DNA of 64,000 nucleotides from contig NW_025963879.1 of NCBI RefSeq assembly GCF_023055435.1, positions 992,001-1,056,000 of the forward strand. The letters are read 5' to 3'. Shown in pieces: positions 2,996-56,263 of the stretch; the stretch's first letter is position 1; every line of letters starts with the position of its first letter. Origin of the DNA: Haliotis rufescens (lineage: Eukaryota). The notes under the pieces are model-generated. The model was not told where the DNA came from. It saw only the letters and a program-made list of their open reading frames with translations, and ran no database searches. The position numbers were made by a program, and so were the translations under genes.

Positions 2996-5900
2996 TCAAT
3001 TAGATCTAATTATCTGTTCGATCCAGTCCATTGCTTCTCTCACAAGAGCGACTCTCATGGGGTTTGAACTGTCGTCACACCGTAACTGTGTCACGGCTAA
3101 TCCCTCCACTGTGCGAGGATCGCTGACGGTGTCTCCCTGGCAAACCACGGGTCCCCCAAAGTCTCCCTGTAAAATTTAGATAGCATATATTTCATCTCGC
3201 AGTACACCATACAATGACGTGTATTTAACACGTTTATGACATGATCCAGAGAATTTGCTTGAAGAAATACAAATGCATAGCCAATGAATACTCTATCGAA
3301 CAAAATTCCTTTGCACGGCAAACTAGTGGTGAAAATGATATGAATGGATCACTGAAAATCACTGATGACACCAGGTGTTCGCGAAATGATTATGCATTTC
3401 CCGTTCTACCGGTAACACCCGTCACATACACGATTTGCTTAAAAAATAAGTGTGTGTTTGTTACCTACGAAATTAAAGCGAAAGGAAAGAAACTAAATAA
3501 AAATAAATAAAAACATATCTCGTTCATTGCACCTACAGTAAAACCAAAGGCGTGTGTAAAACGTGTTTATGAAATTAGTTTGATTCAAATAAATCAAAAT
3601 TGAAATAAATAAAATGTTCTTCATTGCAGTGAAGAAAACTAGTATATATGTATTACGTATTCATAACATTACCAGAAAATGTGATTTATTCAAACAAATC
3701 ANNNNNNNNNNNNNNNNNNNNNNNNNNNNNNNNNNNNNNNNNNNNNNNNNNNNNNNNNNNNNNNNNNNNNNNNNNNNNNNNNNNNNNNNNNNNNNNNNNN
3801 NNNNNNNNNNNNNNNNNNNNNNNNNNNNNNNNNNNNNNNNNNNNNNGCTTCCCCTTTCATTGACAGCACAGCCGGTCCTGGATGGATAGGTTGTCTCAGT
3901 TCCATTCTTGTAGTAATCAAGAGCCTCACAAGCAGTTTGGCCAAACAGGGTCATGTCAGCTTTCTGCAGTCTATCTCTCAGTTCTGCAAAATAAAGCTCA
4001 ATGATAAAGGTTATGATAATTCAAAACCTGACTTTTGCATAGTTTTACAGTATTCTCATCAACGAATTTATAAATAAAAGCGACAAAAGATATCTCTGGC
4101 AAAGCAGAGTCGATTGTACAATTCCGACTTTAGCATGAGCATGTGTTTATGAATGACTATCAAATTTAGTCTTTTAGTAGTTATTCAGTTTTTTGAAGTT
4201 TTTTAGGAGGCAAATATAACAAGTATGTAAGGTAATTTCAGACTATTAATCAATCTTGATTTGAGATGACATAACCATTTAATAAATTCTAACCTTCTAA
4301 AACCATATTGATAAATTCCATTTGGAATGTGTTTCACCATTACCTTTACTCAACCACAATTGCTGGGTGTGGCGTAAACAAAATTCACTCATTTATCTAA
4401 TTTTACTGTATGATAAACAATTTTTTCAATGTGTTTTACTGTATTATATAAGAGAGATACGCGATAATCGCAAAGAACAATGAAGAACGAAGCGTGGTTT
4501 ATTTTACGATTAAACATTGTTCTATCATGACGTCATTTGTGGATATTCGAAATATACATTGGCAACTTGATGACGTCATATATTGGATGACGTTATAATT
4601 ATGTTTCAGGGGGAAGTGTCTGATACGTTGTTCCCCGCAGATATACGAAGTGGCAGAACGATCACATCCAAATTTGGGAGAGACATGACAATCGGTATTA
4701 GGAAAAACGGTAGGATTGTGAAAATACGCGGAAAAATACCACACTTAACCCACCTGTTCGTGAAATGGACTAATCCAACATTCCGAGGTCGGATTCTATT
4801 CAGGGAGTCAGCATTATTCACATATGGGTAAATAGTTTTAAAGAATGACATTTTATCAACATCCTTAAAGAGGCTGTACATCATGTTGATATCTCATATG
4901 AGAATTTTCTTAAGTAATATACAATAGTATACAGTAACTTACGTTCATTCTCATTGGCTCCCCATCCAGTGATCTTACACTGAGCAGATGTACACCTCTG
5001 TGTAGATCCGCTGGGCAGACAAACTGGACGGACGCATTCATTGATGTCCACATCGGTTTCTAGTTCCACAAGGGCAAATGCATTTTCTGAAATTCAATGA
5101 CATTGTATGTATTCTGATATTTGTGATTTTGCGTCACCTGTTTTGTTAGATGTTACCTTCAGTTCCTTAACAGTATATATGTTACAGTCAATGTGTCAAA
5201 TGACTGAAATTTTCACTTAGGCAATTTACAAAACGCCAAATATTTCAGTCATTTTACAGTTATTCTTAATTATTATATTATAATAACGATTTCCAAACAC
5301 TTTTGTGCTCTATTTCATGACTGAAAATAATAGGATTAAAAGAAAAAGAAAATTATGGCATTTTTGTATTTTCCTGGGTTCTAATCCTCGCATAATTAGA
5401 ATTTAGAATATGGTGGTCTTTTTAAGCCTTTTTGAACTTCTTAATAACTTTAAGACAATCTGACGGAAAACCAATTATAAAATTACTGAAATAGTTTGGC
5501 GTTTTGTAAATTGCCTAAGTAAAAAATTCAGTCATTTTACACATTGACTGTAACATATACATATATAAAGCACAATATTAATAAAACTTATGTGAACCCG
5601 TGAAGATCCGGGTTAGAATTGGTCTTCATGATCAGCAATCCATGCTTGCGAGTATGCTTGTCTTTAGAGGCGACTAACCGGATCGGGTAGTCAGGCTCGC
5701 TGACTTTGTTGATGCATGTCTTATGACACCGTGTTGTCTGGTCCAGCCTCGGATTATTTGCAGACCGCCGTCATATAGCTGGGATATTGCTGAGTGTGGC
5801 GTTAAACAACAACTTATATGCTGTATCACTGATGCTGTATATTACGCGTATATCGATGCAATGTGCGCTCCATTGCATATTGTCAATGTATTTTCTAAGA

Positions 5901-8900
5901 AAATCTACACTTGGACGCACTTACCAGAAATATAGTCTACTTGTTCAAATAAGGATAAGCTATCCATCTCATTATCGTCGTGATATTTACCTTGCCATAT
6001 TCTCTCACTTTGGACGAGGGAGATGTTGAGGACGTTGAGGAAGTTGGTGTTGACGTCGAAGTTAAAGTCGGGGTGGAAGTAAACCTGTTTAACTCGCCGG
6101 AGTTGTTCGCCTCCATCCTGGGACTGGTGGTCGTAATCTCCCAGAACGACAAACATCTGATTCTGGAAAGACTCCGATGGTAAGTTCCTACCAGCGCTGA
6201 AAAACAGAATCACGTCCACATGAAACAGCTGCACTCCGAGGACATCTTCGTTCAAGGGACAGCTGTATTGGGGACCAGGCCTATTCCCCCTCGGCTTCTT
6301 GGGGTGACCAACCTGGACACTGGACTGGATCTGACGATGAAATCCCTTGGCTGCATTTCGGCAGGTCTGTTTCAGAGTGTGGTTTTAAGCAGCTTTTAAC
6401 AATACTCAAGCAATATTGTTATAAGGTAAAAAATGGGTACAGTGTGTGAAGCCCATTTGTGGTGTCCCCCGCCGTGATATTGCTGGAATATTGCTAAAAG
6501 CGGCGTAAAACCATACTCACTCACTCACTATAAGGTAAAAATGCACCCAACACGTTAGAAAAATTATGACAAATTCAACCAGAGCGACTTCTTTCGTGAG
6601 TCTTCAATGCTATCACTGCCATTTATTGAATCAGCAGGGACAGAGCACATTAGTGGGGGCTTGCTTCGATGCTGTAGTTGCATGTGGATAAATCAGTACA
6701 GAATATATAAAGTAGACAGAAGTAATAAGATATAGAATTCATAAGATCATTAAGGGCATCACCAGTAAGTAGTTCTCAGTAATTTGCCATCACGAAACAA
6801 TCGCGTGTCCATGGTCTGGTTTGCTATCTTAACGCATGATGCATTAGGACACGTGACAAAAGCGGGTCATGCCTGAAGGATGGTTCATTGTGAGTGAGTG
6901 AGTGAGTTTGGTTTAACGCCGCTTTTAACAGTATTCCAGTCATATCACGGCGTGTCAGCTTAATGTGGGAGGAAAGCCCGAAGTGATGCAGGTCTCAGAC
7001 GTTTACCACGTCGGTGAAACCCTCGAGCACGGGTATGGTGCTGACAAACCTAGAAACATAATTGGGGCGAACCGGGATTCGAACCCACAATCATAGGTTT
7101 CTGGCGTACCCAAGGGACGCAACTCTGCACAGCGAATCGCGGCGCTTTAGACGACTGGGCCACCCGTGCCCCCTGGTTCTTTGTGATTATGTGCGGGTTC
7201 ACAGTCAGTCGATCGAGTCGAATCGCCTCAGCGAGCCTGTCCGGACCTGCATTATCCTGTCCTGTCCGGCCTTATCATGTCCAGTGCGGCCTTATCCTGG
7301 CCTGTCCGGCCTTATCCTGTCCATGTTGGACTGCAGTTTGTATCAAACTTTGTGTAATGTTAATATTTGTATGTATGCGCCTGTATATGAATACTTTTGT
7401 GAGTAATTAGGATCAAAGGTCGTCGGACCCTTCACTCCTTGACTTAGATAGATTCCCCCGAATATGCAAGGTACCGAGTTAGGTCTAACACTGACCACGG
7501 CAACACTGTTGTAGTGCCCCCTGACGCCCCAAACACAACAACATAACGGCGGGTGACACCAGACATTGGCTTCACACATTGTTCCCATGTGGGGAATCGA
7601 ACCCTGCGATACCGGAGGGAGGGGAGGGGGGGACCTGTGGGTAGTCGACCTAGGAGGAAAAAGGCCATAGGGTATTAGTCCGGGGGGATAGGCCTGATAC
7701 CCTCTGTTGTGGAATCGAGCTTCATGACATGCGCTCAGAGATACGGTTCTGATTAAGGATCGCCATCTTGGATTTGAAACCAGGACTAACGGATGCTTGA
7801 ACGGTGCAACATTTAAATACGTAATCTGTGCTATGTAGACGTTCAGGTTACATGCATCCTAAGGGACAGGGTGGGTATCCCAAACTTGTTCGAATACCTT
7901 TACATTGGCATTTCAATATCAAGTGAAATTCCACTGATTTTATACTAACTCATGTTTCAAATTGTCATTGTCAAAGGGAATGGTTTTCGAGGAACGACCG
8001 TCGTCTACTTACAACAACACTGAAAGTGGAGTGGTGAGAATCCACTTTCGCTGAACTAACACACCGCCAGCAACGTGAACGGAATTAAAGATGGACTGAG
8101 GCTGACTGAGGTCGGTGACACGACGTAGCGACGCCTGCCACGGGGACTGACATGGTTCTTCATCCACGGACAGAGCAAGTCGGGCTCGAACCCCAAGCTC
8201 TCCACAGCCTGGGTAGTTCAGTGTAGAGACACCGTCTGAAAGATGGAACGTCTTTAGTCGGGTCTCCCTGGTATTGGCTTCGTTGCGTGAGTTTGGTTAA
8301 CCGTCGCTTTGGACATTATTAATTATGTGACGGCGATTATTCTTACATAAGAAAGAAATAGTAATAATGTTCCTGGAAGTGCTGCGCTTTGGTGAACACG
8401 GGCGTGGTTTTAACACGGAGGATAAGAATGGTGTGAATCTTTTAGCGATCTCTAAGGCTATATCAGTATGTGGGGGCGCTTAATAAGAAACGTTTTGTGC
8501 TTAACGTATGTGTAAATGAAAAGGTTTGTATGGACATCCAGAATAAAGAATTCGGTAAATTCCCATTGTCTGGTTTTAGTTGTTCCAAAAATGAATTAAA
8601 GTATATATTTAATTACTTGGTCATCATATACACGTGAACATGTAGTTGGTCATAACAAATGACATAGTACTTCGTGGGAGATATTTTTAAATTTGAATCT
8701 TGATAAGCTAGTGATTTTTTTCACAACTGATTTATGTTTTGGCAAATTGAATTGGAATTCCACATGCATCTTAATTTACACAGTTTAGGGACGTTGCATG
8801 TTGGTTTGTTCCTTTTTGCTAAGTAGTTCTGAACAAAAAGAGTTATGAAAGCGAAATAATGGAACGTAAAAACGCCCGGGAACACAAGTATTTTAAATTG

Positions 8901-11900
8901 CCTAATTAATATTTCCAGTTAATTTACCTTTTTGTTCACAGCATACGTTGTTCGTCGCCCAACAGAGAAGGTAGTTTTGGGGGTTGACTGCTTGCCAGCC
9001 GGACGGGCAGTCAGATGCGTATCTCCCTGGGTGGCAGCTGCGAACAGCTGGCCCTTTCGCCCCACGAGCACACACTGCAGACAATATATTGCAATGAATT
9101 AAGCATTTTACATTTACCCATATATTGTAAAAGACAATATACACCTTCCGTGAAACCGCATGGCTCAAAGTTCATTTATTTAGCTCGACGTTTCGTTTAT
9201 GATATATGATATATACTTTCCAAAAAAGTTCTGAATATTTGAAAATAACAGATCATTACAGAAATATAAACAGGTATCGAGTTATGGTTAATGGATGGAT
9301 CAAAACATAAGGACTAGGTTAACTTGACAATCAACAGAATATAGCGATGTATTTTGTAAGAGTGCAAAACCAACAAAGATGACAGGGGGGTGTAGTATAA
9401 CAACATCATTGAGATCATCAATATTGGGTCACGTCTGGCTAGAATGTGTCCATTTGTAAACGGCATTACACGTGGTCGTCTAGTTAGCAACTTGAACTAC
9501 GGTGGCCTGGCGCAACTGATCAGCGAATTGTTTGGCTCGATTTCTAATCGATTCTGGACTTGGGAATACACATATGGCGCCCTGTGTGATGGCCGATTAT
9601 TATCATTTTATGTCTGCAGAAAGCTGTTCCAATGTCTGCAAATCGAGACCGAGACACATTGAATATATTGGCTTTATTTCGCTGAGCTCTACCAGTTTGT
9701 AGCATGTCAACATCCCGTAGGCCATCATCATGGATATTTTTGTTTGCAGGTTGTCGTTTGATAAAGTTATCAATATTATGAAAGATCCAAATATAACAGT
9801 ATTCTGGAATAATACAATCCAATTGTTTTACCAAGAGTACATTCCTGGTGCCTCCTGTTAATGAGATAACAACAGAACGACGTAGACGTGTAGTCTCATC
9901 TTTGTTTAGCCAAAATTAAATAATGTGTACAGGAAATGATTACAAAGTAATATTATACACCATCTGTTTTAAAACACTTTCATGTATGATTTCAAATTTT
10001 GTTTGCAGATATTCTCTGATAAGTAAATGTGTCTGATTTCCCCGACGCCATACTCTTCTAAATGTTTCTTATACGTTTATATTTTCATAGGTTAAATATT
10101 TTCAGAACATTGACATTGGTTCTTTGATAATTTAACCCATTTTACTAATTTACTGACAGACACGATTTAACCCATCGTGAAATAGTAAACCTTTATTTGC
10201 GGTCATTAAACATCAACGTATTCCATCAGTTTGTTTGTTCCAAAACTCTCGCCCACAGAGTAGGTATCTGCAAATGTCACATCCACACATCCACACGGTA
10301 CAAGTACATATGCTGGTAACACACACCTACACGACTATACTTACTTTGCCGTCAACTGTTAAGCCTACTCATTAATTTGTGACATTTGCCTTACCTTGCT
10401 TATCTTGAATAACGACTGATTCCACGAAACTTCGTATTAAAAGATAGAAAATACAAATAATACAGACACGATTTCCAACTAAGGTCCAGTTTTACAAGCA
10501 ATTATGTTACAGAATGTTACAGATGACTGCGTGAATGTTACAATTCATTAGTTAACATTAAAGTCATGCTTTAAATTCTTTGCGTTTAGTACCTAAAGCA
10601 AACAATAAACGGTTACAACGCGAAGTCATAAGAAATACACACATTTACAATGATTTGTTGAATGTGATCTGTTAAATCTGAGAGGACAACTTGGCATCAC
10701 TATGAAGAAATTAAATTGATAACAAACTTGGTGTGAAACACACCTATTCTCCTTGAAATTTTCTCATAATCATTTTTTTCGTTTGCGATGTAATATCTGC
10801 CCCACAGAATTGTGAACAATCAAAATTATTCTATGGTAGGAAAATGTTAATATGAATACATTCCGAGATGTGGCTGTTTCACTGGTCTCTTATATTTCTA
10901 GTTCAGGTGGGTAGGTCAGTGGCTATTTTATCATTAATGTATTGAGTGAGGGAGTATGGTTTTACGCCGCTTTTAACAATATTCCAGTGGGGGACACGAG
11001 AAATGGGCTTCACACATTGTATCCATGTGGGGATCGAACCCGGGTCTTCGGCGTGATGAGCGAACGCTTTAACCACTAGGCTACCCGACCGCCCTATTAA
11101 TATATTGAACGATATCGGATCATCAGTATACCAGAAGATGAATTTTAAACTATTTACTAAATTCGCTTGTTTCGATTTTGCAAAGCCGAGCCGAAATTCT
11201 AACTCATATGCATAAAGATACATTCTCTGAGCTTGTTAACTGAAGCTTCATTAAGAAACTCTCGCTGACTTGCAAACAATAATGAAAATGACCCTGAATT
11301 AAAAAAATGACTTATGAAATATTAAAATTTTAGATTTCATATTTATGCTTTGATGTGTTTTCTTTGAGGAAATACAAGAAAACGCTACGTGGGCGTGCCA
11401 TGGCTTTCAGGTCGATAATCGTCTATCACTCTGAAAAAGTGTTTAGATACCTGAATGTGGGATGCATATGCTTATTGGTCAAGGAACAACTGAGTCTCAT
11501 ATCTGTAACATGATATGGAAGAATACCTTCCAGAAAATTCTGGCTGTTGATGTCAAGTCATTAGGTTCAGCCTTCGTTTCATATCTGTATTCCTCTCACA
11601 GTTGTTGTTGATTAACTACACAGGATCTGTTGACGCTTCCCAGAAATCATGGGAAGGGTACAATAGATTACCTCAGGAATGCCAGAGCATATATTTGTTC
11701 GGATTAAAACCTGCTTTGGGTCGTCCTTCTGTTTCAGGACACGTTTAGAAGCAAATCTTCTGGGTTTATTGAAAACGTACATTGAAGGTTCCATGTTCTC
11801 ATACTGATAATAACAAGTTAGACAGTATTACATCGCAACCAGGACATGAGAAACATATTATATGAAAAGACATATTCACAACCTATTTAATTTCCATGTC

Positions 11901-12157
11901 CATGACATAATTTATAAGAAATTTGAAACCCAATTGGAAACGCTTTTCATCAGTGCGTCAGAAGGAGGTATATGACGTAATACGTAGCAAATCTCACTAT
12001 TTAAGAAATATATATATATATAGGTTATATCAACATCTATAATTTTTACTTGTCTATACTTACGACTGTTCCTTTGAAATGCCCATGGAAGCTCCGCAAG
12101 GGAAGGACTTCCTAGAAAGCCAACAAGTAGTACAAGGGTCTGCAGTCTAGTCGCCAT
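2996..12157 (-). CDS. Gene A: secreted six-Cys (beta-defensin/clip-like) domain + non-catalytic chymotrypsin-like serine protease homologue, ~378 aa, 7 coding exons
   Basis: Minus-strand GT-AG exons with compatible phases: 12064-12157 (MATRLQTLVLLVGFLGSPSLAELPWAFQRNS, signal peptide); 8928-9074 (CARGAKGPAVRSCHPGRYASDCPSGWQAVNPQNYLLCWATNNVCC); 8013-8235 (YPGCG..RAR/LALS..SPWQASL..GGVLVQRKWILTTPLS); 5991-6196 (VVLGDYD..VYFHPDF); 4943-5086 (ENAFALVEL..VRPVCLP..CKITGWG); <=3847-3983 (LQKA..ACEAL..GCA, 3' end lost in the N-gap 3702-3846); 2996-3166 (GDFGGPVVC..DWIEQIIRSN*). Triad positions H57>L, D102>A, S195>F. Confidence 0.88.
5176..5558. mobile_element. MITE with ~80-bp terminal inverted repeats
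   Basis: TATGTTACAGTCAATGTG..CTTAGGCAATTTACAAAACGCCAAA at the left end and its reverse complement at 5480-5558; TA-rich flanks. Confidence 0.75.
6891..7173 (-). mobile_element. SINE family 1 copy
   Basis: Full-length match to 40844-41127. Confidence 0.85.
8928..9074 (-). CDS. Gene A exon 2: six-Cys module C-x11-C-x8-C-x14-C-x6-CC
   Basis: Phase 1-1 exon with acceptor ctgcag and donor gtaaat; shares CPxGW..NYLLC..CC with gene B exon 2. Confidence 0.85.
10800..11800 (-). mobile_element. Decayed Penelope-like RT fragment in gene A intron 1, interrupted by a SINE
   Basis: YLYAYELEF...FIFWYTDDPISFN resembles PLE LYxYExEF...FRYIDDxxSxN; a related decayed stretch lies at ~12700-13100; boundaries approximate. 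Confidence 0.55.
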
Positions 12158-12186
12158 TTTGATCCTCAAATCTCGGGTTGATCTCG

Positions 12187-12193
12187 TTATATA
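12187..12193 (-). promoter_or_regulatory. Putative TATA box of gene A
   Basis: TATATAAC, the same motif as in gene B, but only ~30 nt from the ATG, which implies a very short 5' UTR. Confidence 0.4.
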
Positions 12194-15001
12194 TCGGCTT
12201 GGTACACCTTTGCCGGCCCTGCAAACACCTTTCGGGAATGTTGGCCAGGCCTAATTTGTGTGATGTTTCCACACCCAAGTCAAACACTCACACTGTAGCG
12301 GGGATAACCTCCTCGTGCTGAGATTTGGTGGTAGGGAGGTTTAATTAAAATAATGTTACTCTTAGAAACAAACCACAAAAGACACATTGTGTCAGTTCTT
12401 CCTGTTATATTTAACATGTAACAATGAATTGTTCCTTGAAGATATAGTTTTGAGTTACCCAATGATTCAATTAAAATTAAATATATGTATAATATATCAG
12501 AAAATATTTGCATTTTAATTGGAAGTGAGAATAATTATTACCTCACAACCATTATCTTAGAAAAAAATATTTTTTTTAGAATGAAGTAAGAATATATGAG
12601 TACAACAATATTAACATGTGGCTTTTTTCATTGCCCATTACTGATTTATATATGAGAGTTGGAACTGCATCTTCAATGGCTGTACGTGTATCTTATGGAG
12701 AGAGTTTGTTGTCACTCTGAATTTCTATGTCTTTATGTAATTATGAAACAAATGGGATTGTTTCACAGATCTGTTAGATCAGGTGGGTAAGTCAGTTGAC
12801 AATTCTTGAACTCATGAATTGTAAGCATTCTCTGAGATTCCGGCCTACAAACGATCACGAAAATGACACTGATTAAACATATGCCATACAAATATTAACA
12901 TATTAGATGTCATATTCATAGTTTGATGAATAAGAGGTGCCTCATATGTTTTTAAGATATGTTTTACAAAATACACAAATCTCATTGAAACCAAAAGGAA
13001 CTTTCTCTTCGTCATTCAAATATGATTAGCACTTGACACACGTCGCAAATTGTATCAAAATCATTACATATTATTTGATAAATCATACCCAAACTGCCAT
13101 CTGAAGAGGTATAACCAAAATATCAAAACCCGCTTGGGGTCCACACTTTATTGGTTCGGAAAGTATACACCGGCTGTGAGAAATACGATGGAAGGGGGAT
13201 AACTCCTATCACAAATCGTCAATGTTTTTACAAATCGCCCATCAAATCGTGATACTGCTACTTAGCTTTGAAGAATGAGTTGTGCACGGATATCATATTG
13301 GCGGGTCTGGTACTAGGATGGTGCATGGATTGCTGGATTGGATATTTTGATATTTATGTCCATTTCATAACGCTCGTCCCATTCACTAAATAAATGCGCA
13401 TGGCGCTATTAATCATAATTCATTTGAATGTCAGTCTTGTCTTTTTAGAGAATACAACCCCTCTTTCTTATGACAGTCTAACGCTAGGAGGTATTCAGTC
13501 ACAATTACATCCCACCGGGTACCCATTCACTGTTTGATAAACGTGGGCATATTTCGTCACAATATTTCGTCACATGCCCAAAGAGATACCCCAAGTTGTA
13601 ACCTTAGTGTCAATGTGAGGTAGGACAACAGTCCAAGAAACTCTTTCCCAATACCCATCCACCTACTCACCAAGATGGAGGATGGAAAGATGTGGAGGAT
13701 GAGGCAAAGGATAAAGGATGAGAACATCAATTCGTCAATCCATCCAGACCATCAGCTGTAATCGCACCTTAAAGTGTAGTCAAGGAAGAACACAACGTAG
13801 CTCCGTGTCCTTGTGTCGTCTCCATTGTCCTGTGTACTCTTGCACATCATGATGTTAATCAGATACGGGTGTGCATACATGTATCTCCAGAAAAGTGGTG
13901 AGGAGTATGAACAAATACTGCACCTATTTTATTTCATGAATATATTTTCGAAATACTAGCATAATCATACAAACACTTTTCCTCGAGTTTTTGAATAAAC
14001 ATTATACAAAGGCTTTAGCGCTGGTAATTTAAAACATGCGCTGCATGCACTGCTCTGCAAATGACACATTGCATCCTGCACATCTCCCGTCCTTAAAATA
14101 AATATATTTTTAATTTAAAACGAGAGATGGTGTTTACTTTTCGAACCTAGCGTCCTAGCGCGATTATACGACTGTGGCCAACGCAGGCGGGCTACTCGCA
14201 CGAACTAGCGTATTCATTATAAGATGATTCACAGCCAAGACATGCTGTATGTGATGTGTACTTGTATGTTTGAACATCATGTCATTATGAAAAAACAAGC
14301 CGCAGAAACAGACCTGCCATGACTTGCACAAGATGATGGCTTAGTTCTACACCACGTTTGGTCAATTTCCCAAAACACTGTACACAGGGAACACCAAGAC
14401 TTGCCTTCACAAGCCATGTTGTGAATAGATCCCGCTCTTGGCGTCACGAGCGAACGCTTTAACCACTAGGCTCCCGGACGCCCCACAATTAAATCGTTGT
14501 AGACTACAAAACCGATCGCAGCCCGGTTGAAGTTTAATAGATTAATTTACATAAATGCCACGTGCATGTGTGTAACACTTCGCATTTATATAAATCCCTC
14601 GCACATATATTCAAAAGGTTTCGAAAAGTGAAGTGACTCAAAACGTATTTGTTATGGCAGTGTCTGTGTCCCATTAGACTTTACCCTCCGTTTGGAAAAA
14701 TTTTGCCACCCTCTTGAAATCTTCTAATTTCTTTAATATTTTAATATCCATTCCAACATGTCATTTCAATCACTACCACTAATCATGACACGAATAATAT
14801 TGATAGGTTAACAGTAAAATATACGATAATCAATGCTCCCGATGACGTATGTTAGATAAACATAGATCACAAAGAAAAGTTTTGTGCCAAGTATTTTTTA
14901 TAACCTTAAATACAATATACATCTGCAAATGCCAGTTATGATGCAATAACAATATTAATCATGTCCATTTGATGGTGTTCATAATTTTGACGTCACAGTC
15001 T

Positions 15002-18000
15002 TCAGGGATTCTCTCTGAAGATCTGTTCGATCCAGTCCGTAGCTTGTCGGATGTCAGCAATGTTAAACTGTGAACTTGTGGGATCGCTGCTACATGTGAT
15101 CATCTCCATCATAGTCAGACTGTCAGCAACATACTTCCCAGTGGCATCATCCCTGCAGATCACGCCACCACCAAAATCACCCTGAAAGAAAATGGCAATG
15201 AGAGTGTGAGAGAGTTGGTTTTACCGCCGCTTTGAAGTTTGTTTGCTATATAACGCCGCACTCAGCTATAGTTCAGCTATATGACGGCGGTATGTAAATA
15301 ATCGTGTCTTGACCAGACCATCCAGTGATTGGTATCCTGAGCATCGATCTACAATCGGGATACGACGACATGCATCAACCAAGTCAACGAGTCTTACCAC
15401 CCTATCCCGTTAGTCGCCTCTTACGACAAGCAAAGTGGCCTCTTGGGTTGCTGAAGACCTATTCTATCCCGGATCTTCACGGGTCTGATTGGAGGAAAGG
15501 GATGCTGGCCTCAGGTGTTTACAACCAGACTGGGTATGGTGCTGAATAAACTAGAAACATAATCCGGGCGAATCTGCGAATCAAACCCACGGCCTCGGGT
15601 GCCTGTGTTATTGCAATAAAAGCGAAGGTATTTTTCAGCCGTTTGTTTCATTGTGTCTACTAATATGTAATGTCATTTTCAAAAGGGGTGTCGCTTAGGA
15701 AACTGGCAAAACGCAAAAAACACTAAAATGCCACCTCAGTTAAAACTAAATGTGACATGTTGGAGTGAGAATATGTTAGGTGTTTTTTTGCTAAAACAAA
15801 ATTCTGTGAACAGTCGAGTTTGTATTCTGTATGTACAGCACGTTTTAAGAAATGAAACATGTATATCGGTTAATTGCTTTCCTATAAAAAAAACAACAAC
15901 ATATATGGAGAGTATTACATTCATGTTTGTACCATTGTTATTTTATGAAACGGATCTCAGGATTGTCCGAGTGAAAGCGGGAGCAAAACATTATTTCCGA
16001 CAAGTTTCGTAAAATCACGACAGGCAAACAAAGTTAAAACTCAATTGAGTCATCATAATTATTGAATATCAACTGAGGGGATCCAGTTTCCTCTACCGTG
16101 TCAAATGACAGTATCCACGTGATGTCATAATAAAAATGTGAGTCGCTAAATATCACGTCAACAACTATGCTTGTTTCAACAATGGAGTCTGGACTACTTT
16201 GACACAGCGACAACATGTGGAGCGTACGCGTATTTTGAATCGTCCGTGGCTATAGATAATAGTACTCATGATTATGGCTTTCATATGAGAGCAAACGGAG
16301 GTATCTTCTTGGGTGTTCTCTATACTCACGTTGCATGGCGAAGCACCAGTTCCGTTGATGGCACACTTGGTCGTCAGAGGTTGAACAACGGGAACTTGGT
16401 TGTTGCGGTAATAACTGAGGGCTTCACATGCGTCGAAATCAAACACCTGTACCTCAGCCTTCTGGAGAACGCCCGACAGGTCTATAGTAATAATAATAAT
16501 GATGATGATGAATGAGAAACGACCCATACCGTAGGGGTAATATGACACACAATCAGCCAGGTCACACATTGTAACCATCCGATTCTCATTGACCGCCTCT
16601 ACACACAAGAGACACAATCAGCCAGGTCTCACATTGTAACCATCCGATTCTCATTGATCGGCTCTACACACGAGAGACACAATCAGCCAGGTCACACATT
16701 GTGACCATCCGATTCTCATTGATCGGCTCTACACACAAGAGACACATTCAGCCATGTCACATATTGTAACCATCCGATTCTCATTGATCGGCTCTAAACA
16801 CAAGAGACACAATCAGCCAGATCACACATTGTAACCATCTGATTGTCATTGATCGGCTCCACAGACAAGAGACACAATCAGCCATGTCACACATTGTAAC
16901 CATCCGCTTCTCATTGATCGGCTCTAAACACAGAGACAGGAGACACAGTCAGCCATGTCACACATTGTAACCGTCCGATTCTCATTGATCGGCTCACACA
17001 CAAGAGACACAATCAGCCATGTCACACATTGTAACCATCCGATTCACATTGATCGGCTCTTCACACAAGAGACACAATCAGCCAGGTCACACATTGTAAC
17101 CATCCGATTCTCTTTGATCGGCTCTACACACAAGGGACACAATTAGCCAGGTCACACATTGTAACCATCCGATTCTCATTGATCGGCTCTACAGACAAGA
17201 AACACAATCAGCCAGATCACACATTGTGACCATCCGATTCTCATTGATCGGCTCTACACACAAGAGACACAATCAGCCATGTCATACATTGTAACCATCC
17301 GATTCTCATTGATCGGCTCTACAGACAAGAGACACAATCAGCCATGTCACACATTGTAACCATCCGATTCTCATTGATCGGCTCTACAGACAAGAAACAC
17401 AATCAGCCATGTCACACATTGTAACCATCCGATTCTCATTGATCGGCTCACACACAAGAGACACAATCAGCCATGTCACACATTGTAACCATCCGATTCT
17501 CTTTGATCGGCTCTAAACACAAGGGACACAATCAGCCAGGTCACACATTGTAACCATCCGATTCTCATTGATCGGCTCTAAACACAAGAGACACAATCAG
17601 CCAGGTCACCAATTGTAACCATCCGATTCTCTTTGATCGGCTCTAAAGACAAGGGACACAATCAGCCAGGTCACACATTGTAACCATCCGATTCTCGTTG
17701 ATTGGCTCTAAACACAAGAGACACAATCAGCCAGGTCACACATTGTAACCATTGGATTCTCATTGTTCGGCTCTACACACAAGAGACACAATCAGCCATG
17801 TCACACATTGTAACCATCCGCTTCTCATTGTACGGCTCTAAACACAAAGAGACAGGAGACACACTCCGCCTGTCACACATTGTAACCATCCGATTCTCAT
17901 TGTTCGGCCCTAAACACAAGAGACACAATCAGCCATGTCACACATTGTAACCATCCGATTCTAATTGATCGGCTCTACACTCAAGAGACACAGTCAGCCA

Positions 18001-37908: not shown

Positions 37909-37926
37909 CTTGTTGTCTTGCTGTAC

Positions 37927-43737: not shown

Positions 43738-44010
43738 GACCCATGAAGATTCCGGGGTAGAACAGGTCTTCAGCAACCAATGCTTGCCGTAAAAGGCGAC
43801 TATGCTTGTCGTAAAAGGCGACTCACGGGATCGGGTGGTCAGGCTCGCTGACTTGGTTGATGCATGTCATCGATCCCAATTGCGTGGATCGATGCTCATG
43901 ATATTAATCACTGGATTGTCTGGTCCAGACTCGATTATTTACAGACCGCCATCATATAGCTGTAATATTGCTGAGTGTGGCGTTAAACAACAAATCAACC
44001 AACCAAAATT
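43738..44010 (+). mobile_element. Non-tRNA-headed short retroposon (family 3), full length
   Basis: Begins GACCC(G/A)TGAAGAT and ends GGCGTTAAACAACAAA; 11-bp TSD CATTCTATATA (43727-43737 / 44011-44021). Copies at 1-185, 2570-2838, 5594-5812, 15235-15486, 29680-29840, 45040-45205, 46190-46415, 57105-57590, 58890-59085. Confidence 0.85.
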
Positions 44011-45570: not shown

Positions 45571-45738
45571 GGGGCGGTGGGGTAGCCTAGTGGTTAAAGC
45601 GTTCGCTCGTCACGCCGAAGATCCGGGTTCCATTACCCACATGGGCACAATGTGTGAAGCCCATTTTCCGATGTCCCCCGCCGTGATATTGCTGGAATAT
45701 CGCTAAAAGCGGCGTAAAACAATACTCACTCACTCACT
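45571..45738 (+). mobile_element. Short tRNA-Asp-like SINE (family 2)
   Basis: GGTAGCCTAGTGGTTAAAGCGTTCGCTCGTCACGCCGAAGA(C/T)CCGGGTTC head with GTC at the anticodon position, (ACTC)n tail. Copies at 6435-6528, 10945-11094, 28955-29120, 30278-30432, 58426-58753, 59818-59985. Confidence 0.85.
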
Positions 45739-48700: not shown

Positions 48701-49153
48701 TTTGGTAAAACAATCTACATAGGTATGGTGCTGTAAAACCAATAACCTGAGATTCAAACCAATGATAAACAGATCCTGGCACGACTAAGGAAAGCAACTC
48801 TGTCCACCTGTGGCCCAATCGGCTAAAAGTGCACCGGGCACGAATGCAGCTGTTAGGCGTTTTCCATTTTGGTGAAACACATAGCACATGGGTATGGTAC
48901 AGAGAAACCAAGACACTTCGGATTCAAACCCATCATCATAGAATCCCGGTCCGCCTGAGCGACACAATCCTGCACAGCGAACAAGGCCACCTTTTCTGGT
49001 AGAAGACTCCGGAGTCAACAATCGTTACTTTTTGTGGCAGTGTTTACCGGTGTAGGAAACTAGTGTAAAAGTGTCTACTGAGATGTGTTTTTTGCTATTA
49101 GGATGCAAATATTAGCTTGGAAGGCAGCACAATACGATAATATAAATGCAGAT

Positions 49154-49159
49154 TTTATT
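49154..49159 (-). terminator. Candidate polyadenylation signal of gene C
   Basis: AATAAA on the minus strand ~350 nt after the stop codon. Confidence 0.4.
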
Positions 49160-49504
49160 TCAAAGCAACAGCATACCCTACATCACCCGTTGATACATAC
49201 GGCCGCGATGTGGTAAAAAGCTATTTTAACCAACAGCGTGTTCCGACAAATCAGCTTCCAGATACATACACGACACTCACAAAAAGCGTTTTGCTACGCC
49301 CTTTGGATCAACATACTGCTCGAACAAAACAGCCAATAGTAGGGTACAAAAAAATCTTATGCAAAAAAGTCTCAGTTACACACGACCTCATTTATGTTGC
49401 TGACTTAAACTATGCGTGTCAACACCCCACAGCATTGTGGCCGAATGTCTTCACGGGTGATTGGGGAACGTGGTGTATTCAAGCTCGTGGTGTCGATAAT
49501 GGGC

Positions 49505-52500
49505 TTAAACGCCGTTAATTGTGTCTTGTATCCAGTCCCACGCTCCGTAAATGTCTGTGAAGATGAAAAGCTGATCACTGCAGGCGCCGTTGCCGTTGGT
49601 GTAGTAGGACACGATTCCCTCCGCTGTCCAGAAGCTGGAAGTGTCGTTCTGGCAGACCAAAGCACCTCCGTTGTCACCCTGAAGTACATTAACCACATGC
49701 CCTTATTAAGCAGATGCGATCACGTTCTCGCATTCTGTTTTACCATTATACATTATGTGGAACTGGAACTATTCCCAAAGCAGTGTCATATGATTTATTT
49801 ATTTTAAAACTGCTAGCGAGTGAGTTGAAACATTTATTTCACTCATATCGCGGCGTGTCAGCTTAATGCGGGAGGGAAGCCTGAAATAATGCAGGTCTCA
49901 GACGTTTACCACTTCGGTGAAACCCACGAGCACGGGTATGGTGCTAACAAACCTAGAAACATAATAGGGGCGATTCGGGATTCGAACCCACAATCATAGG
50001 TTTTCTGGCGTGCTAAGGAACGCAACTCTGCACAGCGAATCGTGGTGCCTTGGACGACTGGGCCCCATGGTGCCCACTATTTGATATTGATTCATAAACA
50101 CATGTTTAATATATTGTCAGAATAGTGGGGTTCGAACCCACGATCAAACTTTAGGATTCTGGCGTGACCAAGGGACGCAACTTTGCATAGCAAATTGCAG
50201 CGCCTTAGACGACAGGGTCACCCGTGACCCCAAAACTGCTAGACGTCATGTAATATATACTCTTTAAAACAAAGCAGAGGATAATCGATAATAACAGATG
50301 ATACAGAAATGCAAAGAGGTATGGAGTGGTCATGGATGGATAAGAAAAAGGAAGGGCTATGTGTAACACGATACTCGACAGAACATGTTGACGGTGTATT
50401 TTGAGGGTGCTAGCAACCATGAAAGGTGACAGGGGTGTGTTTGTAAAACATGAACGATTGGTCAAACATTCGTTTGTACAGCTTGGCTTGGTCCGAATCA
50501 AATTTCCAATAATTTGAGTAAATTATCGAGTGAGATGGGTGTAGTGCCACTTACGTCAATACTAAAATGGACTGTCACGTTTCTTCAATCCAATTGTTCA
50601 TTCAGACAAGGAAATATGTTAATAGTTTAGAAAAAGTAGCGGATGGCCTTTGACGTCGGCGTACATGTATCCCCATCACGTCCCCGACTATTGCATTCTG
50701 GCGATGGTTTGCTGCTGGAGGTAGATACATGCACGCTGGCCACGAGCGTTATCGTCTTGAAAGACGTAGGTCAGCATGACGCGAAAACGGCCCATAACCA
50801 ATGTGCACTGGCAGTCATAGTGATCCCGCCCCAACAATACAGACCCATCCCCTATTGTCATGTTGCAATATACTGTGGCACGTGGCCGGGATCCAAAAAC
50901 CATATCGTTATATCCGTCAGTTCGTTTCAACCGTAGTTGACTGTATATCCTGCTATGTTTCGGGTGTGTTGGAGCGTTAGGGTTTGGTAACGAAACGGTT
51001 TTATTCTGACACTCATTTCAAAGCTGATCATTCTTCTGCGACCCGTCATAACATCAATATTTCATGACCTCCTACTTTTTTGGCATATCTTTATGATCAA
51101 TCTGTCTTTCTTCCTCTCATATATCAATATCACCTGGGTTTTTTTCAAAAAATACATTTCTCACACTCTTTACAACTGTTACGTCTTTCAGAAGACAAGA
51201 TTACTGCAACAACTCCGTTCCAAATAAAGGAAAGTTGTTCGTTTCACTTTGAAAACCAGACCCCACTCACGCGACAAATCCCCGTGTCCGTCTTGGTTAA
51301 AACGCCGCAGTGTGTTGTGGGCGGTTGAGGCGTGCCTCGGATGTGCTCACAGGTGCTATCATCAATGATGACGGCATCAACAACCTGGCGGACCCCGGAC
51401 ACCTGAGGATTGGTGGTCTCTGAATGCACAAAACAGATAAATAATTAAATGTAATCTGTTCACTCTTTCTTCTCTCTTTTTTAGAATTGGAGGCCACATG
51501 CCCAAGATTACAATTTATATAAACAATTTGGACAATGGGTTGATACTTTTAACACCAATTATCATAAAGTATATAGTCTAATTTATATCAACTATTTTTT
51601 GTACTTTAGATTATGGGTAAGATTGCCAAATTTGGTTAGCATGTGTGCCAAGTCTGTTCCTATAAAAAGTGCTGTAAGATACAATATTAGGAATTATAAT
51701 AAGACAGAAATGGTGAGTTACCAGTTTTGCATAAATGTAATCTGTACACTGTTCTGAAGTAAAAAGCCTTCTGCACGGTACGGATATATCGCTTTATCAT
51801 ATAATGGGTAGGTTTCTCGGCAGTATTATGCCAACAGATAAAAACGGTTTCCGTTGGGGTCTCATACGGATAAAGATGCAAATATGAAAAGTCAGGCAGA
51901 TACAACTTTCAGTGGAAACAAATAAACATGGCGTCGCCCTTGTCAAGGCTCGCTAAATACAACGTTTATTCCTAATGATGTTTACCTTCCCAAACCACAG
52001 ATGCATGTTTCGGTGTTATTGCAAATTACAAGGACACAAGACCACATCCTCCAACCAACCAACAAGAACTGATCCAGGCGACAAGAAAATGGCGACGTTT
52101 CCTACGTGACGTCATCAGTAACTGACATTTTCTGTGCACCGGAGAGTTTTATGTCTTGTAAGCAGGGGGACTAATACACGCTATTAATGTGACATGTCAT
52201 TGAACATGAGCGATTTTTGATGTGTGTCCTTTTTCCAATAAAGTTTGTTTTTTCTACCTCACCTCAATTCGGGCAAATGCCATGCCAATATCGGATGTTA
52301 TATGACTGTCATTTTATATGCTGATTTCGTTGAGATTTTGAGATTTTCAATACATTTGACTTCATGCATATGCAACTATCTTTAGTTGTGTTTAGAATAG
52401 AATGATTTATAACTATGGCAAAGTTTTCTTTGGATATCAGTTTACCTACAAAAAGCATAGATCTACACACAAATACGGTTTTAAAATGTTTTGTCAAGAT

Positions 52501-55500
52501 TGCTCACCTAACGTGTTCCATACTTTGTGACAAATTTAGGAATGATTTGAATAAAGTAAGTTTGATAAGGACTCCCATTTTGTCTACATTTTTGCTACTT
52601 TCATACCTGCTTGATCTGTATATCCGAAGCCAGCTACTTTGCAGTTTCGTGGTGATCGGAACACATTGTACACATCTGAGGGTGGACACACACGATTGAT
52701 TCTGTCAGAAGGAGTTATAGGAGCAGAAAGTTGTGCAATGGCCACGTTGTTGACTGAAAGTGGAAACATTACAAATGACACATATTTCATTGCGAACACT
52801 GTGGAAAACACTGACAGGGTAATAATAAAAAGGTTCGAATGTCACGTTCTTAAATACATTACAAGACTTACTGAGAACAACCTCTGGATTAAGATTGAAA
52901 AGTGAATCGTATTGGTCGGCTGTTTTGAAGAGGACATCGGGCTGCAGATGCACCACAGTCAGGTTCCTGTGCTGTTCCTGTGTTTCCTCTGCCGCAGCAT
53001 CGTAGTTCCCCATCAACACACGGCAGCCTCCAGCCTTTTCACAACTGCAAACAGAATGCAGAAAAGAAATGAACGGTTTTCAACTTTTATTGATCTGCTT
53101 GATGTTGAAACCTATGTCCAGTTGGAATTACAAGATGAAGAAGCTATGTTGTCATTTTTCTTTGGTGCTGATACTCACTTCTCACAATGTATTGATATAG
53201 TTACATGGGAATCTGTTATACTGATATTTTCTGCTTATGTACTTGCATTAAAGCCTTACCTTGATTATGTCATCTGATCTAACCTTTTGTACTGTGTGAA
53301 TGGCATGACACTGGTGCTACTGTCTTGTATTGTATATATGTACAGGTAATATGAGTTTGTGTGAATACGTTTGATTAATTAATATGTATAATTTTAGGAT
53401 TAACTTCTGGAGGAAATAAAGAATCTATCTGGCTTTCCTCCAACATTAAGCCTACCGCCGTGATATAACCTAAGCAATGTTGAAGGCGGTGTTAAGTCAC
53501 TAACTCACTCACTTAATTCGTAGATGAGACATGCGAAATGCACGGACATGTGTCGAAATCACGAAAAACGCGTTTAACTTTATTATAGTATTTTTATCAT
53601 TTTACATATACACCTTTCGGTCAAATTGTAAGACCACACAAGCTGTTTTCACCTGGGTGAGGAAAGGTAATACCTGCGTAACGAAACACAAAATTCATAT
53701 TTTTCAACATAATTACACAATCAATTCAGCAGAAACTACTTCGACGTCTTATTATTTCATTTAACCAATAATTGCTACTGCTTCGTACTCCATTCCTCAG
53801 TCAACAGAGACAGAAATGTATAGTGCGTGGGTGTGTTTTTAGCAATAGTCCACCAATAACACGGCGAGGGACGCCAGAAATAGACTCCATCCATAAGGGA
53901 AATCGAACCCGGGCCTTCGGCGGGATAATTACATCACAAAGGTACCCGAATTGAATTGTTCTGTACATTGTTTCTTTGTGTGTGTTCTGATAGCACCGGG
54001 GGGCACGGGGGTCCCACTAGTCTAAGGCGCAGCGATTCGCTGTGCAGAGTTGCGTCCCTTTGGCACGCCCGAAGCCTATGATTGTGGGTTCGAATCCCGG
54101 TTCGCCCTGATTATGTTTCTAGGTTTGTCAGAACCATACCCGTGCTCGTGGGTTTCACCGAAGTGGTAAACGTCTGAGACCTGCATCACTTCGGGCTTTC
54201 CTCCCACATTAATCTGCCACGCCGTGATATAACTGGAATACTGTTAAAAGTGGCGTTTAACCCAACTCACTCACTCAGTCACTAATAGCACCAACCTTGT
54301 TGCGCAGTAGGCATCAAAGGCAATCCATGCCATGTCGATGAGGACACCCCCACAGACTAGGTCTCCAGTACCAGTGTCGATGACTTTGACGAGCCATGGG
54401 TTCTCAACGGGACTATCCGGATCTCCGTTGAGGACACGTGGAGTCACCAGTATACCACATGGGGGTGGAGCTGCCAGACATAGAGAGGACAATGTGAAGC
54501 AAATATCTTTCGAAGGTGTGTGATCAAGTCGTCTAAAAACACGCAATTCGCTGTACAGAGTTGCGTCCCTTGGGCACAGCAGAAACTTATGATTGTGAGT
54601 TCGAATCCCGGTTCGCCCTGATTATCTTTAAAGGTTTGTCAGCACCATACCCGTGATCGTTGGTTTCACCGAAGTGGTAAACGTCTGAGACCTGCATCAC
54701 TTCGCGCTGTCGTCCCACATTAAGCAGCAACGACGTCATATAACTGGAATACTGTTAAAAGGCGTTAAACCCAACTCACTCACTCACTCACTCTTCAGGG
54801 CCCCTGTAGTTGTTCAGCTTATTAATGATATACACATGACATGGCACGTGATCCTGTGTACAGCCTATAGACTACACATGCGGGCCTCGATGATTCATAT
54901 TCACGAACAGTTGCTCATATGTTCTCCTTACAATTAACATTTCTTTACACAGGCGCAGTGTCTGAAGTTACTGTTACTGAGAAACTCGCAGGGACTGAAA
55001 GGTATGTTCGAGACAACAAAGACATCCGACATCCGAGATTTGACTGTATTATATAGTGTATGGCAATATGTTCGTTTAACACGTTTGCTGCATTGACTGT
55101 CAGTCTGGAAGAAACTGGAATAAACTGTGACGATAGAAAAATGGGTGGTTATTGCCTTTTTTATTGCCAGTTTAAACGCATAAATCAACCAGATTGTGAT
55201 CAAGATCCTGTATAAGCACAATCACACCTAGTTTGTATGGTAAAATAAGGATATTCAGATTCTGATTCCTGTACGGATGAATAAGGATATACCAACTTGG
55301 AGTTCCAACACAACATAGGGCGTCATTCAGGCAGAGGGATGCCAAAGGCTGGGTACCCGGTGGGCACTCGCTCATATCATAGCATGTATGCTGCTGTATC
55401 TCGCATGCTGAAAAAAAAAATTGAACAATCTTTTTTTCGTATTAACGAATGTATTATCGATGAATAACTGTTTCCTTGTAGGCAAAAAATAACCATCTTT

Positions 55501-56263
55501 CATAAATTCACAGCAGTCTCTGAACCTCGAAACAAAACACACCATTGACATGAAGTCAACGGATGACAAAGTCTAATGTGACAAGAGCAGAAGACGTTCA
55601 ACTGTTGTCAGATTTAGACTGGCAAAAGAAAGCATGCATTTAAAAATCGGATTCGACGAAACAATACTAGGCTGAAAAGAATTATATGTTTGGTGAAAAC
55701 GAAATAATTAGTAAACACTTTTATACATCTACTGTCAAAGTATCACCAATCGTGTTCCTCTATTTCACAACATACTGTGTTTGGATGCTCGAGATCGCAA
55801 TCAAAACAACACACTTTTGATTTGTTACTTCCTTATAACATTTACCGATCGTCAAAATTAGTAAACAGTACAGAAGTATTTGTAATTCATTTGGGAACAT
55901 GCATGTTTAGGATTAAAAAGTTGGAGATTTGTAGTTTATGTATATATGAGTGATAATAACGAAGCAGCCTCCCTGTGTGGACATCGGTCAGATGTGGAAC
56001 ACAAGACTCCACGCTTGATGCACGAGCAGACTAAAAATGCAGTCACGAGATCCGTGTCTTGCACATCACCGTACCCGAATGGCGTGGAGTGTTCATGCTT
56101 TCAATCACTGGTTTTCCGGACCAAACTCCAATAATTTCAGGCCTTCTCGATACAGGTTGAATATTTTTGAAAGAGTAAGTAACTCTAACTTACGTGGTTT
56201 AAAGACAAATCCAACGGTGACCCCAGCAAGGCAACACGCTACGAGAGCGACAGTGATCTTCAT
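49505..56263 (-). CDS. Gene C: secreted beta-defensin-like domain + non-catalytic serine protease homologue, 332 aa, 7 coding exons
   Basis: Exons: 56194-56263 (MKITVALVACCLAGVTVGFVFKP); 55297-55407 (CEIQQHTCYDMSECPPGTQPLASLCLNDALCC); 54296-54470 (PPCG..TPR/VLNG..NPWLV..CGGVLIDMAWIAFDAYC); 52872-53044; 52607-52753 (NNVAIAQL..NRVCPP..CKVAGFG); 51271-51419; 49505-49678 (GDNGGALVC..WDWIQDTINGV*). 999 nt open, with the same intron phases (1,1,2,1,1,0) as gene A. Triad positions H57>Y, D102>N, S195>N. Confidence 0.9.
50560..51060 (-). mobile_element. Tc1/mariner transposase remnant in a gene C intron
   Basis: GDGSV.. and VFQDDNARGQRA..YLQQQTIARM resemble Tc1 GGGSVMVW and FQxDNAxxH motifs; heavily deleted. 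Confidence 0.6.
53998..54275 (+). mobile_element. SINE family 1 copy ~20 nt from a gene C splice donor
   Basis: Full-length; the flanks share TAGCACC (probable TSD). A second copy at 54525-54792 lies on the other side of the same exon. Confidence 0.85.
55297..55407 (-). CDS. Gene C exon 2: six-Cys module C-x6-C-x5-C-x10-C-x5-CC (beta-defensin-type spacing)
   Basis: Phase 1-1 exon with a poly-T acceptor and donor gttggt. Confidence 0.85.

Follow-up and report, generated by a model that had tools for sequence, protein, structure and literature searches.

A tandem array of predicted secreted S1 pseudoproteases with a six-cysteine module in the red abalone Haliotis rufescens

Non-catalytic regulation by pseudoproteases of the S1 family is central to arthropod immunity and, in vertebrates, to coagulation and growth-factor signalling. 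Vertebrate members with N-terminal modules, such as protein Z, HGF/MSP, haptoglobin and azurocidin, reuse the chymotrypsin fold for binding after loss of the catalytic triad, as we propose for the abalone proteins described here. Protein Z carries EGF domains ahead of its dead S1 domain, and HGF needs cleavage at the 15/16 site for activity; the N-terminal domains of the vertebrate proteins (Gla, kringle, CCP) are unrelated to the abalone module. In arthropods, clip-domain serine protease homologues (clip-SPHs, also cSPHs) are cleaved, after which their chains are disulfide-linked (PMC10643895), and their behaviour has been described (PMC10643895, PMC6901238). Here we analyzed a stretch of 64,000 nucleotides from Haliotis rufescens, referred to as the window (RefSeq assembly GCF_023055435.1, contig NW_025963879.1, positions 992,001 to 1,056,000). 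It contains three genes, A, B and C, all on the minus strand, each of which encodes a signal peptide, a six-cysteine module and an S1A-fold domain.

The abalone family and clip-SPHs (CLIP-A, PPAF-II, Anopheles CLIPA8/CLIPA28, Drosophila cSPH35/242) have in common an N-terminal six-cysteine knot ending in CC, a tether cysteine and a basic cleavage site at the start of the S1 domain (both predicted in abalone) and a non-catalytic S1 fold. Both are secreted, the abalone proteins by prediction, and both form tandem gene families. The parallel in architecture drawn by a first-pass annotation of the window appears sound with respect to the six-cysteine knot, the tether cysteine and the Arg-hydrophobic pair at the 15/16 site. 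In contrast to clip-SPHs, in which mainly Ser195 is exchanged, the abalone proteins have replaced all triad residues together with the 214–216 strand, EGF arrays can stand between module and S1 domain, and the module is missed by the Pfam CLIP and CLIP_1 profiles. Furthermore, the abalone family is so far known from gastropods alone, whereas clip-SPHs are arthropod proteins.

Six-frame reading of the minus strand yielded three sets of trypsin-like exon pieces, and pieces of the Pfam Trypsin profile lay in the correct order along each set. A profile of the first S1 exon of A, B and C, compared with 1.8 billion representatives, returned near-identical Haliotis proteins. Exon-level searches led to three H. 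rufescens RefSeq proteins, each of which was mapped codon by codon onto the window with GT..AG introns required; the full-length sequences used in this study are database proteins that these searches returned, not hand-joined models. P0153 (C), P0166 (B) and P0152 (A) showed zero mismatches wherever the window is readable. Mapping of C and B was exact, each internal junction having an AG acceptor and a GT donor, and mapping of A was exact on either side of an assembly gap (3702-3846). S1 exons start in phases 1,2,1,1,0 in B and C; the four fully read S1 exons of A follow the phases 1,2,1,1 and its last exon fits phase 0. The description of A, B and C as same-strand paralogues with shared exon phases, open frames and intact splice sites was thus borne out, and the end points assigned at first were right, 56263 belonging to the ATG of C and the stop codon of A ending on base 2996.

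The layout of signal peptide, module and S1A domain held for all three genes, but gene B additionally contains 13 calcium-binding EGF (cbEGF) exons between module and S1 domain (Pfam EGF_CA/EGF_3, 13 matches). Isoform X2 of gene B skips one of them (31513-31635), and P0165 and P0166 both map exactly. Orthologues of gene B with the same layout exist in H. cracherodii (921 aa) and H. asinina (918 aa). The module exon is flanked by phase 1 introns and all EGF exons are phase 1-1, which accounts for repeated EGF insertion at the module-S1 boundary. Such inserts occur in B, in the two neighbouring genes P0163 and P0168 and in Gigantopelta P0047.

The triad columns were located by aligning 177 near-full S1 domains from the search matches to the family hidden Markov model with hmmalign; 109 domains with H/D/S at the three columns, within TAAHC, DI and GDSGGP, served as reference. 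At the positions of His57, Asp102 and Ser195, gene A carries L/A/F, gene B F/S/F and gene C Y/N/N, exactly as first annotated. A HMMER alignment of A to hepsin likewise gave Ala for Asp102 and Phe for Ser195. Remodelling of the active site, also part of the first-pass annotation, reaches past the triad: substitutions also affect the Ser214-Trp215-Gly216 strand and Gly226, with which active proteases hold their substrate.

The fold itself is retained. Full-length proteins A and C matched Pfam Trypsin at 1.2e-28 and 2.5e-21, respectively. Exon 5 of gene B matched the same profile at 22.5 bits and the H. asinina orthologue of B at 1.2e-19, and 295 residues of B align with A at 41% identity. The AlphaFold model of C (mean predicted local distance difference test score, pLDDT, 77) superposed on bovine chymotrypsin with Z 30.8 and a root mean square deviation (rmsd) of 2.0 Å over 235 residues. 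Foldseek and structure comparison of the whole C model returned generic S1 proteases only; no clip-protease structure was prominent, and the module was not covered. Most disulfide cysteines are intact, as had been stated: Cys1-Cys122, Cys168-Cys182, Cys136-Cys201 and Cys191 occur in each of the three genes, while Cys42-Cys58 is kept in C and lost from A and B. Moreover, the S1 domains of the family share additional cysteines of their own. As judged from these alignments and the predicted fold, A, B and C are S1A fold members and not peptidases.

A search of the genome beyond the window revealed that the tandem array consists of six same-strand genes, three of them past the window edge, and that eight genes of the genome bear the module. 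The cluster annotated at first as three genes has six members. Compared with the whole genome, the module profile matched exactly eight places, always beside this type of S1 domain. By this search the module is private to the pseudoprotease family in H. rufescens and never free-standing. Between gene C and P0163, about 0.9 kb past the end of the window, lies a lone open piece of 58 aa on the minus strand (contig C101, which holds the window at 992001-1056000; C101:1056880-1057044). It shares 65% identity with the final P0168 exon and may represent a relic exon, or else a portion of a member that has no annotation.

In a maximum-likelihood tree of 85 S1 domains the family formed one clade of 17 rows with an SH-aLRT (Shimodaira-Hasegawa-like approximate likelihood ratio test) support of 98, and of 97.9 in a second tree without four long branches. 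A complete triad is found in none of the 17 members. They belong to Haliotis, Patella, Lottia, Gigantopelta and Batillaria and thereby to four major gastropod groups, which argues that catalysis was lost long ago and that the genes have been kept since. The family had been called molluscan; as all clade members are from gastropods, gastropod is the better term on present evidence. The segment between module and S1 domain varies within the family, with no insert, a Thr/Pro-rich linker (Patella) or 2 to 13 EGF domains. High-ranking fish and salamander matches (P0001, P0002 and P0007) were rejected as members: they are poly-protease proteins with mostly intact triads outside the family clade, and they rank high because scores are summed over many domains.

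A protein of Pomacea canaliculata (XP_025084188, P0020, 'TMPRSS9-like') carries the same kind of module, C..C..CPSG..C..CC, directly before an S1 domain. It differs from the family in having two tandem module-S1 units, both with His, Asp and Ser intact, and is probably an active protease. Grouping P0020 with the dead clade by a tree constraint was not rejected (approximately unbiased test, p-AU 0.57; log likelihood +7.2 relative to the free tree). The combination of module and S1 domain therefore probably predates the loss of catalysis.

Despite the loss of the triad, the parts associated with zymogen activation are conserved. Arg or Lys followed by L, I, V or F occupies the chymotrypsinogen 15/16 column in 16 of the 17 clade members, the start of the seventeenth not being aligned there; in A, B and C the pair is Arg with L, I or V after it. 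Throughout the family neither Asp194 nor the GDxGG glycines change, and within the motif only the residue at 195 varies. Every member has Cys in the Cys1 and Cys122 columns (100%). In the C model, Val73, which follows Arg72, superposes on residue 16 and Cys65 on Cys1 of chymotrypsin, and the linker around the 15/16 site has a pLDDT of <50, consistent with an exposed loop. As read from the alignment, what has been kept is what a zymogen-type activation requires, together with the means of holding on to the N-terminal piece afterwards.

Expression was examined in RNA contigs of four runs (X1, X2, X5, X6) from two studies, tissue not stated, for window positions 15000-20999. The contigs cover 15000-15181, 16330-16481, 18596-18745, 18880-19097, 19267-19492 and 20186-20314 with the introns skipped. 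Four gene B junctions were listed as CT..AC joints on the plus strand, corresponding to GT..AG on the gene strand. The contigs run on into exon 21080-21199 (letters match 21080-21109). Joining of the S1 exons to 20186-20314 and 21080-21199, both cbEGF exons, demonstrates that the S1 part of gene B is spliced to EGF exons and not directly to the module. The single exonic difference between contigs and window is synonymous, and contig depth was high in all four runs. Mapping of RNA had been proposed as a check on splicing, and for gene B it gave spliced transcripts in each of the four runs.

Intact orthologues with every cysteine kept were found in H. cracherodii, H. rubra and H. asinina. Gene B is approximately 71% identical between H. 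rufescens and H. asinina with 95 of 95 cysteines kept, an outcome with a chance of about 7e-15 if cysteines change as often as other residues. Between orthologous S1 domains of A, B and P0159 (72-80% identity), 11/11, 11/11 and 13/13 cysteines are retained. Differences between gene C and its H. cracherodii orthologue are clustered: 10 of 18 fall into residues 137-174 and 8 into the other 294 residues (Fisher p 2.7e-6), which argues for uneven constraint, unlike neutral decay. This stretch of 38 residues is encoded by exon 52872-53044, lies between the His57 and Asp102 positions and may be a fast-evolving recognition surface. S1 identity between H. rufescens and H. cracherodii is 94% for C, 99% for A and 98% for B.

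Taken together, we consider it probable that these genes represent a gastropod-wide family of secreted pseudoproteases which act as cleavage-activated, disulfide-tethered, two-chain, non-catalytic adaptors. The gene structures, the triad loss, the retained fold and cysteines, the splicing and expression of B and the old triad-less clade are observed. The kept 15/16 site, Asp194 and Cys1-Cys122 lead us to infer the following course. An upstream trypsin-like protease would cut at the Arg of the 15/16 site, and the new N-terminus would insert against Asp194 and switch the conformation of the S1 domain. The N-terminal knot, with the EGF array where present, would stay bound to the S1 domain via the Cys1-Cys122 disulfide, and the resulting two-chain protein would serve as an extracellular binding or adaptor protein, as arthropod clip-SPHs do. 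In gene B, the 13 cbEGF units would provide a long, calcium-stiffened, multivalent arm. The biological setting of such a binding role, for which the first-pass annotation suggested an immune, mucus or shell-matrix system, is likewise conjectural.

Several points weigh against the adaptor model. Secretion, cleavage and binding are deduced from sequence and a predicted model, and the retained Arg and Asp194 may be structural leftovers instead of a working switch. The full-length gene B protein has no Pfam Trypsin match at E<=0.01, its S1 domain being too diverged. Neither Pfam nor profile searches nor hhalign gave a significant match between the sequences of the module and of clip domains. RNA evidence covers gene B, and the runs were labelled RNA by guess; the gene B contigs must derive from RNA, however, since introns are skipped at exact splice sites. 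Finally, maintenance was judged by proxies, namely cysteine retention and clustering of substitutions.

The strongest competing explanation holds that the abalone proteins are true clip-SPHs, with a module homologous to the arthropod clip domain and cascades that predate the split of molluscs and arthropods; they would then be cofactors in a phenoloxidase-like or Toll-like extracellular cascade. We regard this as unlikely. Apart from the shared layout with its CC-ending knot, C-x(3-8)-C-P motif, tether cysteine, cleavage site and dead S1 domain, it is favoured by the putatively active, module-bearing relative in Pomacea (P0020) and by the RefSeq name of P0159, 'phenoloxidase-activating factor 3-like'. 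The module follows the pattern C-x(6-13)-C-x(3-8)-C-x(9-17)-C-x(4-9)-CC in 22 modules from 9 gastropod genera. Its six cysteines form a predicted knot of 30-55 residues with the last two adjacent, and the arrangement C..C..CP.G..C..CC looks clip-like. In language-model features the modules of A and C, with a mutual identity of about 36%, are nearest to the same arthropod CLIP_1 clusters (0.79 and 0.82). These are leads only, as shuffled proteins reach this score range a third of the time. Moreover, Pfam CLIP (PF12032) and CLIP_1 (PF18322) matched none of the modules, full-length members or module exons genome-wide, whereas the firefly protein P0023, used as positive control, matched CLIP at 49.8 bits. 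Hhalign of the 22-sequence module profile with three arthropod clip domains gave a probability of 2.9%. Among solved-structure sequences the module profile found neither a clip domain nor a defensin, the only match being a chance one to collagen IV NC1 (E 5.3). The S1 domains point in the same direction: solved clip proteases are no nearer to them than hepsin, kallikrein or chymotrypsin. The best solved-chain matches of the family (about 1e-15) are all active proteases, so that kinship with the vertebrate pseudoproteases is no closer than general S1A. By these comparisons the layout resembles that of clip-SPHs, and membership in the CLIP family is not supported. The label clip-like given in the first-pass annotation stands for layout and cysteine pattern but not for homology by profile.

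That annotation had also called the module defensin-like. The AlphaFold model of the A module (pLDDT 74.6) matched helianthamide (Z 3.0), hBD-2 (Z 2.7) and oyster big defensin (Z 2.3) best. These three superposed at about 2 Å rmsd over 33-37 residues. The structural matches listed ranged from Z 2.0 to 3.0, most of the 17 being defensins or defensin-like sea-anemone peptides; alpha-defensins and avian and crocodile beta-defensins were among these weak matches. One of seven modules matched Pfam Defensin_beta (PF00711; E 0.0039). Beta-defensins and big defensins share with the abalone module six cysteines with a terminal CC, but the scores are far below kinship level and Foldseek on the module model found nothing below E 3. 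In contrast to defensins, the abalone module is always fused to a pseudoprotease and is not free-standing in this genome. The description applies to the cysteine pattern, and the predicted fold bears a weak likeness to beta-defensins.

Less likely still is that these proteins are static components of matrix, mucus or shell matrix, with the dead S1 domain as a structural block that undergoes no activation and with Arg and Asp194 as relics. Gene B, with its 13 cbEGF units, resembles matrix microfibril proteins, the Patella members have mucin-like Thr/Pro-rich linkers, EGF inserts recur in P0163, P0168 and Gigantopelta P0047, and the depth of gene B RNA contigs is high in four runs. However, clade-wide retention of the Arg/Lys-hydrophobic site, Asp194 and the tether cysteines across four gastropod groups is difficult to reconcile with an inert block. 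In addition, the proteins contain no TB (8-Cys) or other matrix-specific domain, and in the library searched no proteomic paper names the accessions of these genes or of their Lottia relatives.

Decaying pseudogenes or annotation artefacts are very improbable. All three catalytic residues are lost and exon 6 of gene A is broken by an assembly gap, but frames are open, splice sites canonical and B RNA is spliced; moreover, intact orthologues in three Haliotis species keep every cysteine and the clade reaches Patella, Lottia and further gastropods of distant kinship. The initial view of A, B and C as maintained pseudoenzymes is in agreement with this evidence. Cryptic enzymes with non-canonical catalytic residues are scarcely credible, since the oxyanion-hole glycine and the GDxGG backbone are kept but L/A/F, F/S/F, Y/N/N and A/A/F across the paralogues leave no conserved alternative nucleophile or base, and neither the 214-216 strand nor Gly226 has been kept.

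All three genes already exist as exact RefSeq models under automatic names, and protein searches returned automatic names only and no curated family name, in line with the earlier statement that no named family was recognised. A literature search (abalone or mollusc clip-domain proteins, serine-protease homologues, RefSeq accessions, Lottia gene numbers) found nothing relevant in the library covered. The names chymotrypsinogen A/B-like, ovochymase-2-like, fibrillin-1-like, LTBP4-like and delta-like D are wrong in substance. Gene B was rejected as a fibrillin or LTBP: it has no TB (8-Cys) domain and no other fibrillin feature, and its C-terminus is a dead S1 domain. Genes A and C were rejected as ovochymase and chymotrypsinogen, as the triad is absent and there are no CUB domains.

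Table 1. Coordinates of the family genes and of other elements. Positions refer to the window unless a contig (C101, C24) is given; exons are listed in the order of the gene.
Feature	Position	Strand	Remarks
Gene A	2996-12157	-	RefSeq XP_048254720, 'ovochymase-2-like X2', 377 aa, P0152, 7 coding exons
Gene A signal peptide exon	12064-12157	-	
Gene A six-Cys module exon	8928-9074	-	
Gene A S1 exons	8013-8235, 5991-6196, 4943-5086, 3847-3983, 2996-3166	-	3847-3983 runs into gap 3702-3846; 2996-3166 with stop codon
Gene A upstream exon of predicted isoform X1	13768-13850	-	P0151, exact mapping
Gene A codon at His57	8024-8026	-	CTT, Leu
Gene A codon at Asp102	5079-5081	-	GCA, Ala
Gene A codon at Ser195	3158-3160	-	TTT, Phe
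Gene A predicted activation-site Arg codon	8180-8182	-	
Gene B	15002-37908	-	RefSeq XP_046333440.2, 'fibrillin-1-like X1', 921 aa, P0166, 20 coding exons
Gene B signal peptide exon	37809-37908	-	
Gene B six-Cys module exon	33705-33830	-	
Gene B cbEGF exons 1-5	32888-33010, 32247-32369, 31513-31635, 30076-30201, 29434-29559	-	phase 1-1
Gene B cbEGF exons 6-10	27980-28102, 27124-27249, 25778-25900, 25127-25249, 24093-24215	-	phase 1-1
Gene B cbEGF exons 11-13	22657-22782, 21080-21199, 20186-20314	-	phase 1-1
Gene B S1-like exons	19267-19492, 18880-19097, 18596-18745, 16330-16481, 15002-15181	-	
Gene B codon at His57	19278-19280	-	TTT, Phe
Gene B codon at Asp102	18738-18740	-	TCT, Ser
Gene B codon at Ser195	15173-15175	-	TTT, Phe
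Gene B predicted activation-site Arg codon	19443-19445	-	
Gene C	49505-56263	-	RefSeq XP_046333458, 'chymotrypsinogen A-like', 332 aa, P0153, 7 coding exons
Gene C signal peptide exon	56194-56263	-	
Gene C six-Cys module exon	55297-55407	-	
Gene C S1 exons	54296-54470, 52872-53044, 52607-52753, 51271-51419, 49505-49678	-	
Gene C codon at His57	54307-54309	-	TAC, Tyr
Gene C codon at Asp102	52746-52748	-	AAC, Asn
Gene C codon at Ser195	49670-49672	-	AAC, Asn
Gene C predicted activation-site Arg codon	54436-54438	-	
P0163	C101:1058986-1073610	same as A, B, C	fourth array gene, EGF insert
P0168	C101:1075265-1091740	same as A, B, C	fifth array gene, EGF insert
Sixth array gene	C101:1099487-1116737	same as A, B, C	triad positions Tyr/Asn/Asn
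P0159	C101:640736-646714	+	'phenoloxidase-activating factor 3-like', triad positions Ala/Ala/Phe, outside array
Eighth family gene	C24:8139208-8150648	-	outside array
Minisatellite	16547-18426		65 bp x 29 copies
Minisatellite	21237-22072		55 bp x 15 copies
Minisatellite	26155-27049		30 bp x 30 copies
Minisatellite	36250-37020		100 bp x 7.7 copies
Reverse-transcriptase fragment	41345-41815	+	Pfam RVT_1, E 3e-8; spacer between B and C

Two assembly gaps touch the genes. In gene A, exon 6 loses its 3' end to gap 3702-3846; the exon is open from 3983 to 3847 (137 nt read; the equivalent exon has 152 nt in B and 149 nt in C). The donor site of this exon falls within the gap, where the database protein has 4 residues. 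The codons of exon 6 end flush with the gap edge and the last exon begins in phase 0; the length of the unread part of exon 6 must therefore be divisible by 3. The other gap (23364-23492) falls within the gene B intron that separates exons 24093-24215 and 22657-22782, and none of the annotated protein's exons is hidden by it. The additional upstream exon of isoform X1 of gene A adds 48 residues ahead of the signal peptide and would bury the signal; this isoform is a prediction only.

The introns of gene B contain four long minisatellites with 86-95% matches, some of which appear as repeated open reading frames in the list of open reading frames. The reverse-transcriptase fragment between B and C is probably a remnant of a non-LTR (long terminal repeat) retrotransposon. 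Furthermore, a short dispersed repeat with recurring strings in its minus-strand translations was found at 7053-7271, 24544-24912, 53937-54110, 54274-54621 and elsewhere. Many copies lie in introns and spacers, one lies directly against exon 3 of gene C on its 5' side, and the repeat looks like a SINE (short interspersed nuclear element).

Secreted S1 pseudoproteases that carry a disulfide knot at the N-terminus are known as a kind, of which this family is a novel form marked by the private module, the loss of the full triad and of the substrate strand, the variable EGF inserts and the range over four gastropod groups. Almost nothing is known about S1 pseudoproteases of molluscs, for which the family adds eight red abalone genes, six of them in one array. 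The module-S1 boundary is a hotspot of EGF exon insertion by exon shuffling, and the analysis corrects misleading database names (chymotrypsinogen, ovochymase, fibrillin, LTBP, delta-like). The family also offers a test case for whether the clip-like architecture arose once or twice. Should clip homology hold after all, doubtful as it is, gastropods would possess a clip-type cascade with active members such as Pomacea P0020 and an old clade of fully dead cofactors. Immune cascades of serine proteases with a clip domain and of clip-SPHs would then date to the protostome ancestor, and clip domains would be tied to the beta-defensin fold. For abalone immunology and aquaculture, the family provides a candidate set of extracellular adaptors.

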